Source of the DNA: Setoptus koraiensis
Taxonomy: Eukaryota > Animalia > Arthropoda
Length of the DNA: 64,000 nucleotides
Assembly: GCA_048013815.1 (NCBI GenBank)
Contig: CM106586.1
Location: forward strand, 12,338,001 to 12,402,000
Reading direction: 5' to 3'
The notes below the pieces were generated by a model, which saw only the letters and a program-made list of their open reading frames with translations, had not been told where the DNA came from and searched no databases. The translations under genes and the position numbers were made by a program. Shown in pieces: positions 38,511 through 44,738 of the stretch (position 1 is the first letter of the stretch; every line of letters starts with the position of its first letter).

Positions 38511-39521
38511 TGTCAGCAACGATCAGCGGCATCCTCAACAAATAAGCTGACCGGGGATGCCCACGTCGGTCGCTTCACACCAACGGTTTACTGAACCGCT
38601 GGCACGACACTAGCTAGCCAAATCATCGGCAAGCAGCCGAGCCGACTCGCCGAGCCACCACTAATACGTGTGTCATATAGGCCAACAAATGGCACAAATG
38701 GAATGGCTGGCTGGCTGGCTGGCTGGCTGGCGACAGACAGACAGACAGCTTTGTCCATGGGCAACTTTTGCGCGAGCTGCAACACAAAACCCGCGAGGCC
38801 CCCATGACGCACCCACTTAGCCGCGCATGAGACAGACTGGCCCGAAATGGAATAATTTGTTCTGGCGACCTCTCTCGGCTACTTATACTGGTTACATGGC
38901 ACACACACACACACTGTGTGTCTGCGGGATATAAATGCCGCGCCGGCCCGACAGACACCCCAGCATCCATATCCCATCGAGCGACGGAGCGACGGACCGT
39001 TAGTCGGACTGCAAGTTGGTTGCGCAACGGACAAACGTGCCCTGTCTCTTTGCCACTGGCTAGTCGCTGCATTGTCTTTTCTCTTTCTCTCACTCTCATC
39101 TGGCCTCTCTGTCATCGCTGGCCTCTCTGTCGTCGCTGGCCTCTCCGGCGTTGTTGGCCTCTCGGGCGTCGCTGGCGTGTTATCGTCGTTCCGCGAAACA
39201 GAAGCCAAGTGGCGATGAGCCGCCAGCAGCGAAACAAAAACCTTTCTCCGTGGCTCGCTCGGCCCACAATCGCCGGCACACACTCATACTTTCACTTTGG
39301 TTCACTTTGGGGCCCCCGTATGCGAGATTGGCCGCTCTGCGTGCCGCTCCAATTTCGGCTGCTCCACTAAACATGTACGCTCCTGTTTTGTGCCCGGCAC
39401 AAGTGAGTTAATGTGCTCTCGTTGTGCCACCCACTGAAGCCCGCCAGAACTCTAATCTATAATGGCATTACTATTTCGGCGGGGCCCAATCTTGTTGCTG
39501 CTGGCGCCGTTGTTGCTGGCG

Positions 39522-39567
<46 letters not shown>

Positions 39568-40778
39568 CGTCGCCCAATCATACACGCTACCTGCGTCGAC
39601 TACCAAAACTACTTATTGGCGTTTTATCTTTGATTCGTCCATTGGGCGCCACCAACGCTCTACTTTGGGGCCCGTGTGCAGCCCGTGCAACTGGCACACA
39701 AACCTTTGCAACTGGCACACTAACCTTTGCAACGGCACACGTACAGCGAGAGCAAGACAAGTGCGACAACAAGTTTGTACATCTCGCCTCTTCGGCTGCA
39801 TGATTGAGCTGAAACCATCGACAGCTCGAAGCTGCCTCTGTCGAAACACTGTGTATGTGTGTGTGCACTTACGCAACCACGCCAATAGAGCACCAGAACA
39901 ATGTGTGCCGCTGCTGTCAATGTGCCAAACACTGTGTGTTACATAACCGACACAATGGGGCACAAATGGGCCCCATTCGCTGACGGGCGCACTCTTTTGG
40001 GCTGTGCTGAGCAATTGATTTGCGGTGCATTAAATATACATTAGTCATTCGCATTAGATTCAATGCAACTTTGTCCGCGCGTGTAGTACATCAATTCTAT
40101 TGTGTTCCTTCAACACCCAGCCAGCAGCACCAACGACAACAACAGCGACAACAACAACAACAGCTACAACAGCCACAACTACCGCCGCCACTACAAATAA
40201 CACCATGTTTCTGCGTTAGAACTTGGAACGGGGCACCGTCGCTGAGCACGAACAATGGCCGGCATGCGAGAACGAACAGTTGCCAGTTTTTGACAACTTT
40301 ATCCTACTGGGACCCCATTAGTATTCATAATAGCTAGTTTGAATAGTTCAGCGCTGCTGTTAGCCGGTGCTCTCTTCCATGTCAAGTTGTTGTAGCGGCG
40401 AAATTTGAGCACAATTGGTGGCAAATTGACATTGCTTATTGTCGATCGACAAACGCAAAGTAGATTGATTGCAGTTGACCCGCTCTGTTCTTTCGCTAAA
40501 CTGACGCCACAAGCAATTCTTGATCGCTCCTCGCTCATCCAACCCAAACTCACAATCGATCCATTTGATACTAAATAATCTATTGTAATCTCAAATAGTC
40601 ATGCTCAACTTGCCACTGGAAACAACTATCATCCAACAACGCCTATGAGTGCTTTATTTCTCATAGGCAGCCCATAGACAGACAGCTCTAAAATCGAGCG
40701 ATATTATTCATCATCATAATGATTTGTGCACACTCGATATCGCGTTGTATTTATTAGTTGTAGACATTATCTTACATA

Positions 40779-41320
40779 TCAAATACAGGAAGCACTAATT
40801 TTGATTCGCAGGCAACGCGAATAGTCGCCCGAGCCAAAGCGTGGAGACTCTCTCCAAAAAATGGGCAAGCTTGTGGCTCGGAGCCGTCCAGTGCCCGTCC
40901 AACTGGAATACAGATGACACAATTTGTCAACAAGTATCTGTTGACGCAACGGCCTCAGTCCGTTTGAGTCCTCCTCTTCTACATCACACTGTACTGACTG
41001 TTTGCAATTGACTGACGACATACTCAAGTAAATAGTGGATACCGTAAAAGTCGTATCGTGCTTGTTGAGTTGCCACGTCGTCCACAACAGTTCCGGCAGA
41101 AGCGTTTTGGGTTCTCATTGTTGTCCACTTGACATGAAAAATCTTGTTCCGATGAGTTTTGCCACAACAATAACACACTTTTGTCCAGACGCTTTGTCTG
41201 CGCGTCTCTGCCCAATTGGCCTCAATTCGATGGCCTCGAGCTCGATTTTGTTAGATGACGCTGTCAGTGAGAGCTGGACACCATGTCACCTGTTCTAGAA
41301 TGGACGATATCACACGTTCA
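40779..41320 (-). pseudogene. piwi: Decayed C-terminal PIWI domain of a Piwi-clade Argonaute
   Basis: Collinear fragments across shifting frames: ERVI..R*HGVQ (RDGV motif), KCVIVVAKLIGTRFF, NASAGTVVDDVATQQARYDFY, QSVQ, DSNGLRP-RQQILVDKLCHLYSSWTGTGR, SHKLAHF, GESLH, LYL. An AATAAA follows about 25 nt downstream. Multiple stops, frameshifts and small deletions. Confidence 0.8.
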
Positions 41321-41740
41321 AAATGCAGATAAAGACACATGAGATCGACTGTGATAGATTCAACAAGGAAATAATTTATGATAATTGTGCATATAAGATT
41401 TAGAGTCCACGTAGAGAGAGAGACAGAGAGAGAGAGCGACCCCTGGTGCGATATCATCGCACATTTTTTAACAGTCAAATTTGGCGCCTTTATTTGGTCC
41501 ACTTTCTGATAGTGATGTCCATATACGCATATGATCCACGTATGACAACATCATGCTTCCGATGCTCAATGTTGCGTGTGTCAGTGTGTGTGTGTGTGTG
41601 TGTGTCCTAGAGAACCATTCACCAACCATTCGCCGTCATCTCGTAATCAACAAACTGCTGGCATTTTATTGATTTACTCTAAATTATACTAATATAAATA
41701 TTAATAATAATAATAATAATTATAATAAATATTACAAATC

Positions 41741-42072
<332 letters not shown>

Positions 42073-42103
42073 TGTGCGATTCAAAGCTAATTCTGTTCCA
42101 ACA

Positions 42104-44563
42104 TTAAGAATAAACATCTGGAGACTCATGAACAATCTCTGCTTTGGCTTTTAGAAAATCAGAAACAAGTGTGTTATTTTGAGAGAATTGCTCCTTTAGC
42201 AATGGTCTTTTAGAGGGCGGAATCAACGATTCCAGATACTCCTGAAGATGCCATAATTGATTTACAAGCACTATCAAAGATTCTACTGCCACAGATTTCT
42301 TTGGATTCTTTTCGTTTGTGGTGTCATTATTCAATAATGTCGCCAGGTTTATAATTCCATGGTTGTAGGATGATGATCTACGATGAGCAGTAGGGTTTAT
42401 TGTTGTTGAATTGGACGAACCTCCAGTAAGACTCTCCCTTATTGATTGTATAATTAGTTTCAATCTCGGTGATACGTTCTTTTCGTCGTTGGATCCAAAT
42501 TTCTCAAACACTGAAATTGTGTAATGGTCCAAGAGATTGTACAATCTTAGTAAGATATCGAAAGATATCGGCTCCAAGACGCTCATCATTTGTATGTATC
42601 GACCAAACAATCGTAGAACATTTAGAGAAGTATTGGTAAGAACTGGTCCAGAGAAAGTAGATGGATACTTATTGGGGGTACTATTTACCGCATCATGAAC
42701 TTTCGATTGGGGAGACAACTTGGACGGCTTGTTAGATGTGCTTGATTGCACATGACAATCATCTTCTGACAAAGGTAAGTCCCCGTCTTCATCAATGAAG
42801 TCCTTATTCAATTCATCAAATAGTTCATCGGATTCATCGGAACAACAATCGGCATCGTCGTAATCGAAGTAGTCCGCTTTATCGGACAAGGAGTGACCAG
42901 AATTGCCAGAGCTCAAGAACAAATCCTCCGAGTTGATGGTATCAGAATCGAGTATGTCGTTAAAAGGATTCACTTGATCCGCGGCGAGTTTAGAACTTAT
43001 ATTTCCCCTGTTTGAAGCATCTAATTTGGATGTGTTAGGGCTACCTTGTTCTTCATCCGATGCTGATTCTATGAGATCTGTAGTAAAATATGTTGTTAAT
43101 GTTTCGTCGAAAGATGTTTGTTTATAATTTTGATTGTTGACGTAACTTTTACTACTGCCTTGCACTCTTAAGAAAGAAAATTCCTTCAATTGTATCAACC
43201 TGAAACTACTTTTGACTGGAAGAACTTCCCACAACTCGTTCTCGAGGAACATTTTTAGTTCCTCAATTGAATTAGAATGATAAACTTTGAAGAAGTTTAA
43301 GGCTTGTTCATTGATCGTTTCTTGTAAATCTTTTGAGACTAGTTGATCAGAACATGCGAATTCATAACTAATTGAGATGATTCTTTCGATAACTTTCAAG
43401 ATTTTGATAAAGTCATCAAATCTATAGCACGAAAGGTCATGATTGAGGATGAGTATACGCAGTTTTTGCTTCATGTCTTGCCAAATTCTCGAAAGACCAC
43501 CAATTAACTTTTGTTCAATGTAAAATCTATTGAATTCTTCTACATTATGAGTTGAGGTTTGATCCAAAAGGCTACTCATCGTGGACTGGTCCTCTTTGGC
43601 CAAACTCAGATCAACATTATGCCAATTAAGAATACACCTGTAGTTGAGCATAATTATCCAAAATACTTTACATATTTCTAACAAACAGAGTAGAAAATTC
43701 TCCTTCGTAAGTAAGGAGCATAGCTCATGGAAATCCTTTTTGATCAATGCCTCACAGTTGTCCGATGACTGTTTCTCCATACCACTCTTGTTTATAATAG
43801 TGTTCTGAGTCAAATAACTCGATACTATAGAGTGAGCTTCATAATTTATGGCACTACAAAAATGCATCAATAGCTGATCGGCGGCCGTCTCAAATCTACC
43901 CATAAGTCTGTATGATTCTTGTAATTTGGCATATGTTTTAGTATTGAATGATAGACATATCTTCGAAAGAGCAATATCAACTTGTTCACCTATGAGTTCC
44001 AACGTATCATTCAGTTTGGAATCTAGTTCTTTAACACAATCAAAATAGCTCAGCTCCGCCAACATTCCTCTACTTTTCAAACATAGTTCTATGGCTTTAG
44101 GGAAATCTTCATCTTTTCCTACAATTGATCTTATCTGTGCAATTGTTTTTTTCAATGAATTTATAGCAGTCAGAGAATCAAGCAATTGGGCTAGCAGTTC
44201 TCTTTTTCTATGATTCTCAACAATCATCAAACCATTCTTGGTAAAACCTGACTTGATTCTATCTAGACACTCTCTTCCGTTAGTACAAACTTTTATAGAT
44301 TGTGTCAAAGATGATTGCAAATCTGTGATCCTTTGTAGTTCCTCAACATAGGCAGGTTGATTGTTGAGTATGAGGTCAGAGACCCGCCTTGTGACGACCA
44401 GCATCTGCCTCTCGAGCCTCTCCCGATGATCTATAAGATAATCAGTGGTCACCGGTGAAGGGAATAACTCGGTGAGATGATCCAATTTGAATTGGTCCTT
44501 TTCATTATAATAAACACGGTCAATTGATTTGATGACTAATTCATCGGGGTCCACAGGATCCAT
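42104..44563 (-). CDS. VPS50: Syndetin / VPS50 (EARP complex subunit), intronless, ~819 aa, C-terminally short
   Basis: VSDLILNNQPAYVEELQRITDLQSSL...CTNGR, EELKMFLENELWEVLPV and LTNTSLNVLRLFGRYIQMM match remembered VPS50/CCDC132 motifs. Likely start is MDPVD (44563); the track ORF extends to 44644 with a TTG start. Confidence 0.9.
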   Translation of the reverse strand: MDPVDPDELVIKSIDRVYYNEKDQFKLDHLTELFPSPVTTDYLIDHRERLERQMLVVTRRVSDLILNNQPAYVEELQRITDLQSSLTQSIKVCTNGRECLDRIKSGFTKNGLMIVENHRKRELLAQLLDSLTAINSLKKTIAQIRSIVGKDEDFPKAIELCLKSRGMLAELSYFDCVKELDSKLNDTLELIGEQVDIALSKICLSFNTKTYAKLQESYRLMGRFETAADQLLMHFCSAINYEAHSIVSSYLTQNTIINKSGMEKQSSDNCEALIKKDFHELCSLLTKENFLLCLLEICKVFWIIMLNYRCILNWHNVDLSLAKEDQSTMSSLLDQTSTHNVEEFNRFYIEQKLIGGLSRIWQDMKQKLRILILNHDLSCYRFDDFIKILKVIERIISISYEFACSDQLVSKDLQETINEQALNFFKVYHSNSIEELKMFLENELWEVLPVKSSFRLIQLKEFSFLRVQGSSKSYVNNQNYKQTSFDETLTTYFTTDLIESASDEEQGSPNTSKLDASNRGNISSKLAADQVNPFNDILDSDTINSEDLFLSSGNSGHSLSDKADYFDYDDADCCSDESDELFDELNKDFIDEDGDLPLSEDDCHVQSSTSNKPSKLSPQSKVHDAVNSTPNKYPSTFSGPVLTNTSLNVLRLFGRYIQMMSVLEPISFDILLRLYNLLDHYTISVFEKFGSNDEKNVSPRLKLIIQSIRESLTGGSSNSTTINPTAHRRSSSYNHGIINLATLLNNDTTNEKNPKKSVAVESLIVLVNQLWHLQEYLESLIPPSKRPLLKEQFSQNNTLVSDFLKAKAEIVHESPDVYS

Positions 44564-44738
44564 ATGGACTATTGAACGATTGTGATGATAATACAACCAG
44601 GTGATGAATCTATTGATCTTGCCAGACAATCGACAACAAAACAATTCTTAGAGATAATGATCATTTAATACAATTCATGAAAACAATTTTTCATCGTGAT
44701 AATATCTAATAGCACACATGTTAGTTGTTCGATAAATA

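Follow-up and report, generated by a model that had tools for sequence, protein, structure and literature searches.

The window analyzed here is a 64,000-nucleotide stretch of the Setoptus koraiensis assembly GCA_048013815.1 (contig CM106586.1, positions 12,338,001 to 12,402,000, forward strand), and all coordinates given without a prefix refer to it. A syndetin/VPS50 gene occupies positions 42104-44644 on the minus strand (match to Vps54_N at 3e-65). Its product is short, at 846 residues versus ca. 964 in vertebrates, and only the first 56 of the 234 positions of the Syndetin_C model were matched; this also applies to related mites. Downstream of this gene, likewise on the minus strand, lies the frame-broken remnant of a Piwi gene (“the relic”). 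Between the two is a Sec61-gamma gene on the plus strand, with exons at 41741-41834 and 41963-42072 that are separated by a GT..AG intron. Joined, the exons form one 68-residue frame; the similarity searches were carried out exon by exon. Microsatellites of the (CA/GT)n and (GA)n types flank the relic (39480-39560, 41410-41440, and 41578-41606), and the stretch 40100-40200 encodes a poly-Q/T-like low-complexity sequence that gave spurious tblastn matches to the Q-rich N-terminus of L021.

The relic was aligned with a frameshift-aware protein-to-DNA method, in which the aligner permits frame changes. Every Piwi-domain protein encoded in the same genome served as a query, represented by its last 330 residues. 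The minus strand of positions 40820-41246 proved to be collinear with residues 721-863 of the 870 in L015 (G000:C2:3886147-3888756), with a score of 236, 71 identities in 149 positions, and at least seven frame changes. L015 and L016 (G000:C2:14421593-14424205; score 238) were the best queries, while Ago-clade paralogues scored 49-57 on the same DNA. As controls, 25 shuffles of the relic DNA gave scores of 31-47, and scores of 30-50 were obtained for 24 other real segments of the window (1.3 kb each). When L015 was searched against all six frames of the entire genome, the relic was recovered at E = 1.4e-11. The PIWI-domain homology that had been proposed from the sequence alone (the “first-pass annotation”) is thus borne out, with 236 against at most 50 in 49 controls, and the frameshift-aware alignment suggested there as a check yields a minus-strand Piwi match with seven frame changes, i.e. 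a pseudogenized PIWI remnant. From 5' to 3' on the minus strand, the features are as follows:

41247 to 41320, minus strand: claimed “RDGV remnant”, indistinguishable from chance.
41124 to 41246, minus strand: segment 1, IELEAI to VIVVAKLIGTRFFMSSG, L015 residues ca. 721-763 (frameshift-aware and multiple alignments).
41023 to 41122, minus strand: segments 2 and 3, with NASAGTVVDDVATQQARYDFY; 1-nt frame changes at ca. 41123 and ca. 41107; sub-cut-off Pfam Piwi match; PDB matches to Siwi and Drosophila Piwi only.
40983 to 41021, minus strand: the part with the most scrambling, whose counterpart in the intact paralogues is the LVSQLTRQGTV..YNV block; frame changes at ca. 41022, ca. 41000, and ca. 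40983, the exact path being uncertain.
40880 to 40982, minus strand: segment with EDSNGLRP..QQILVDKLCHLYSSWTGTGRL; the ten best PDB matches are all Piwi-clade, with Drosophila Piwi at the top (E 0.002).
40820 to 40878, minus strand: tail with SHKLA and FFGESLHA; two frame changes and a deletion of six codons (VPAPCQ).
40750 to 40755, minus strand: AATAAA hexamer downstream of the relic, with no A-tract after it.

When the minus strand of 40700-41700 was read in its three frames, the collinear blocks were IELEAI..VIVVAKLIGTRFFMSSG, NASAGTVVDDVATQQARYDFY, EDSNGLRP..QQILVDKLCHLYSSWTGTGRL, SHKLA, and FFGESLHA; they are distributed across all three frames. The Pfam Piwi model (PF02171) matched the ORF at 40984-41178 with an E value of 5.1e-4 and 19.8 bits, which is under the cut-off of 28.9. 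A second Pfam match among the individual pieces, to Zemlya, fell on an unrelated ORF and was discarded as spurious. The part of the gene that is represented is the last ca. 150 of ca. 870 codons, corresponding to the C-terminal third of the PIWI domain. The relic therefore amounts to about 17% of a Piwi gene; it lacks the N, PAZ, and MID domains and has no open frame. Of the slicer tetrad, the relic includes only the His position (in SHKLA); the part that would bear D, E, and D is absent.

Six motif blocks had been listed in the first-pass annotation. Five of them (IVVAK..TRFF, GTVVDD..RYDFY, KLCHLY..WTGT, HKLA, and GESLH) align to Piwi proteins of the same genome; the sixth, the “RDGV remnant” near position 41290, does not withstand comparison with shuffled sequence, as its score of 18 is below the shuffle mean (19.3) and was reached by 190 of 300 shuffles. 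A weaker similarity said to extend to ca. 41550 was also not significant (score 42, reached by two of 40 shuffles), and the stretch in question falls in the upstream region of Sec61-gamma, which is conserved in a related species. No Piwi similarity above noise was detected upstream of 41246. The downstream poly(A) signal that had been adduced is present as an AATAAA at 40755-40750. With one such hexamer per ca. 1.4 kb of strand across the window, the chance that one would be found within 100 nt is about 7%; the signal is thus uninformative as evidence.

The relic had been attributed to the Piwi clade rather than to the Ago clade, and this attribution was confirmed by two approaches. In a PDB sequence search with two pieces of the relic, the top matches were to Piwi-clade chains only (Drosophila Piwi, PIWIL1, PIWIL2, Siwi, and Ephydatia Piwi-A), with no Ago-clade chain among them. 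To place the relic in a tree, its frames were read as one sequence, with an X inserted at each frame break. It is located inside the Piwi-clade group, whose split from the Ago-clade paralogues is supported at 100/100, and there it joins the L015/L016 pair on a long branch with moderate support (84/84). Over aligned codons, the relic is 48% identical to L015/L016 at the amino-acid level and 64% identical at the nucleotide level. Motifs common to the relic and this pair include FFM.SG and GESLH; in the multiple alignment, the GESLH of the tail is also found in L017. The relic occurs once in the genome; at the nucleotide level, its DNA otherwise matches only L016 (65%) and L015 (67-74%), in both cases at the 3' end. 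Because the DNA is single-copy, the relic is located in neither a repeat nor a transposon-borne fragment, and a transposon-captured gene fragment was ruled out on this basis.

The assembly that was searched for intact relatives comprises 48.7 Mb in two contigs. The PF02171 profile returned ten long open frames over the cut-off and, in addition, two weak matches of a fragmentary nature, the relic among them. Viewed in wider regions, nine of the ten genes each consist of one open frame, 643-1146 codons in length. L014 is the exception: it is broken into two frames, of 583 and 286 codons, and its Piwi-domain match contains three stops. Six of the ten are open genes of the Piwi clade. Alignment with Aubergine, Tetranychus Piwi, and a Siwi-like protein demonstrated that five of these (L015 through L019) keep the D-E-D-H slicer residues, whereas the short L023 has lost them. 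Structure matches placed L015 with PIWIL1 (5.9e-155) and Siwi (4e-149), compared to ca. 1e-32 for human Ago2; L018 matched Piwi-clade structures at 4e-183, and L020 matched human Ago2. L015 and L016 are 92% identical in protein sequence and are 10.5 Mb apart on one contig. Their third-position identity of 0.90 indicates a recent duplication or gene conversion. The orthologue of L019 in a related species (P0001, from sample SRR33593474) is 93% identical to it.

Cofactors of the pathway were also present. A Zucchini/PLD6 homologue with a 250-residue, single-PLD frame matched MitoPLD/Zucchini structures at E 3e-26, and the genome contains four Maelstrom-domain open frames and seven Tudor-domain frames. 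A further Maelstrom-domain match on the minus strand (G000:C2:3212431-3212805) has six in-frame stops; its direct neighbor (C2:3212885-3213235) is a Maelstrom-domain frame that is open. The match may belong to a gene divided by an intron, or it may represent a half that has decayed. An expanded PIWI/AGO3 subfamily, together with Zucchini, Armitage, Maelstrom, and SoYb, has been reported for the eriophyoid Aculops lycopersici (PMC7738191).

These genes bear on the first-pass suggestion that the relic would document how this lineage lost Piwi and its piRNA pathway. A precedent exists among mites, as house dust mites and the scabies mite have no Piwi proteins (Mondal et al. 2018, PMC5805368). The present genome, however, contains the six Piwi-clade genes with open frames, of which five retain DEDH, along with the Zucchini, Maelstrom-domain, and Tudor-domain genes. 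The nearest named relatives of L015 are “piwi-like protein 1” sequences of Aceria tosichella, Halotydeus, Brevipalpus, Tetranychus, and Panonychus; dust mites are not among them. The host is accordingly an acariform mite other than a dust mite, and probably a gall mite, with which its tiny, intron-poor genome of two chromosome-scale contigs is in keeping. The probability that the relic records such a loss is therefore negligible. Intact paralogues elsewhere in the genome had been named beforehand as the finding that would make the relic an ordinary dead duplicate, and this is what the search returned; a homologue of Zucchini, another gene whose absence was to be looked for, is present, so there is no loss of this cofactor. 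Since the genome keeps the genes of the pathway, the relic is silent on the loss of piRNA defense.

At least three other fragments of Argonaute-family genes were found elsewhere in the genome:

C2:13057991-13059119 (L024:3992-5120), minus strand: frame-broken copy of the Ago-clade gene L020, in three frames, 43-84% identical in amino acids depending on the piece, ca. 120 kb from L020.
C2:1976384-1976566 (L036:3385-3567), minus strand: mini-fragment of ca. 180 nt in which residues 1-34 of L016 (79%) are joined to residues 532-562 (77%).
C1:2001011-2002009 (L037:1512-2510), minus strand: partial copy of the Ago-clade gene L022, residues 261-592 (PAZ to MID), 96% identical, within a 420-codon open frame.

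The second of these is what is left of a Piwi gene after an internal deletion, and the third could be either a recent partial duplicate or a truncated gene. Given several such fragments and the frequent duplication in this family, the relic is one of several by-products.

For comparisons of gene order, the close relative was contig L026 of the Logan sample SRR33593474, whose syndetin is 88-89% identical to that of S. koraiensis in protein and 81% identical in DNA. L026 is collinear with the window from cyclophilin through syndetin. The next segment, which contains the Sec61-gamma gene and its upstream region (41475-42135, 73% identical to the related species), is inverted in L026 (L026:5661-6319). 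In the window, the 3' end of Sec61-gamma abuts and overlaps the last syndetin codons; the syndetin tails of the two species differ from there on, with 10 versus 20 residues after ..KAKAE. Homology with the related species stops at 41475, ca. 230 nt from the 5' edge of the relic. The inversion and this end of homology together place the relic against a rearrangement breakpoint that is lineage-specific, and unrelated conserved DNA determines where the relic ends on its 5' side. No match to the relic was found in the remaining 1.3 kb of L026, where the DNA instead matches G000:C2:11584001-11584526; this result comes from one syntenic contig that is rearranged in this region and ends 2.3 kb past syndetin. 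In distant relatives, syndetin is followed by a histone-fold gene and kinesin or by the end of the contig. No Piwi gene is adjacent to syndetin in L026, L027-L029 (all three of which stop just past syndetin and so carry no information on the downstream side), L034, or L035. An ancestral Piwi locus beside syndetin is accordingly unsupported, there being no adjoining Piwi gene in the close relative and in two or more distant ones.

The age and selective history of the relic were estimated from three-taxon branch lengths with either L019 or L017 as the outgroup. On the relic branch, there were 0.35-0.36 substitutions per site at codon positions 1 and 2 and 0.36-0.41 at position 3. The corresponding values on the L015 branch were 0.02-0.03 and 0.31-0.36. 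These figures are rough, being Jukes-Cantor estimates over 131 codons with near-saturated outgroup distances and an uncertain path through the scrambled middle. The ratio of the two position classes on the relic branch is near 1, which argues that the relic has been neutral essentially throughout its history. At third positions, the relic and L015 are identical at a fraction of 0.53, compared to 0.37-0.40 (saturated) for L015 with L019 or L017; hence, the relic shares a later ancestor with L015/L016. The 92% identity of L015 and L016 to one another makes their own duplication much younger than the relic. Syndetin differs at 0.32 of third positions between this species and the SRR33593474 relative. 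By this measure of third-position divergence, the relic would be roughly twice as old as the species split and thus would considerably predate the separation from the nearest sampled relative. In that case, the relative should carry the relic; the lack of it in L026 counts against this age, although L026 is rearranged at this point.

Taken together, the data suggest the following sequence of events. A partial, 5'-truncated 3' copy of a Piwi-clade Argonaute gene would have arisen from the L015/L016 lineage after this lineage split from those of L019 and L017. The copy then would have drifted neutrally, accumulating ca. 0.35-0.4 substitutions per site, at least seven frameshifts, and small indels. 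It was presumably dead on arrival, either as a partial DNA duplicate or as a 5'-truncated copy, rather than being the remains of a full gene that once lived. These two modes of duplication are not separable by the loss of introns, as introns are lacking in the parent genes, each of which is one open frame; the AATAAA has no A-tract, and the marks of a retrocopy would in any event have decayed at ca. 0.4 substitutions per site. That the relic is a non-functional, 5'-truncated duplicate of a Piwi 3' end that has been neutral since its origin is considered likely. Judged from its substitution pattern, it probably never functioned as a gene at this position, though a short functional period is possible. 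No product is encoded by it, and nothing about the state of the piRNA pathway follows from it.

The alternative closest to this account is that of a unitary pseudogene, in which a full-length Piwi gene lived and died at this position and its 5' 2.2 kb were removed by the rearrangement that brought Sec61-gamma alongside. The end of homology so near the 5' edge of the relic is in keeping with such a history, as is the inverted Sec61-gamma segment, the breakpoint of which adjoins the relic. However, the ratio of positions 1 and 2 to position 3 on the relic branch (ca. 0.9-1.0) leaves little room for a past under purifying selection, no orphan 5' half of an L015-like gene was found elsewhere in the genome, and, as noted above, Piwi genes do not adjoin syndetin in the relatives compared. 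A unitary pseudogene is consequently deemed unlikely. A gene split by the inversion was rejected on similar grounds: the missing 5' half was not found, and the sole small L015/L016-like fragment, C2:1976384-1976566, covers different residues.

Two other explanations start from a relic that is not simply dead DNA. The relic could be a putative transcript, e.g. one that diverges from the Sec61-gamma promoter ca. 420 nt away. As a Piwi-derived non-coding RNA or a source of small RNAs, it would then not be inert and would feed or titrate small-RNA regulation of the Piwi paralogues. Its orientation is sense with respect to divergent transcription from that promoter, and an AATAAA lies just beyond it. 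On the other hand, small-RNA targeting would require a closer match to the parent genes than the 64-74% nucleotide identity observed, the substitutions follow a neutral pattern, and the syntenic contig of the relative lacks the relic; a regulatory role of this kind is very improbable. It is more improbable still that assembly or sequencing errors in an intact gene produced the appearance of a pseudogene. Such errors would have to account for at least seven frame changes, a neutral pattern, a 5' truncation against a conserved neighbor, and a 36% nucleotide divergence from the nearest paralogue. The explanation favored here thus remains a truncated duplicate that has decayed neutrally.

As such, the relic is one more dead partial copy from an expanding Argonaute/Piwi family in a small, intron-poor mite genome. 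Neither the relic nor the retroelement located 23 kb away is to be read as a sign of lost piRNA defense. The relic may nonetheless serve as a rough yardstick for the rates of neutral decay and indel formation (about 0.35-0.4 substitutions per site).

The relic can be compared to several known systems. It shares collinear C-terminal PIWI-domain blocks with the Piwi-clade Argonautes, such as PIWIL1/Miwi, Siwi, Drosophila Piwi/Aub, and the mite “piwi-like protein 1”. Those are full N-PAZ-MID-PIWI genes, whereas the relic is a frame-broken fragment in which the first three tetrad positions are absent. L015 and L016 differ from it in having open frames (870 and 872 codons, respectively) that are under strong purifying selection. 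The house dust mites that have lost Piwi are acariform, as is the host of the relic, but that lineage has no Piwi-clade gene at all, and the present genome keeps six. The resemblance is to the duplicated, truncated pseudogenes of expanding families: like them, the relic is a fragmentary, single-copy, frame-broken, and neutral copy of one member of a multi-copy family.
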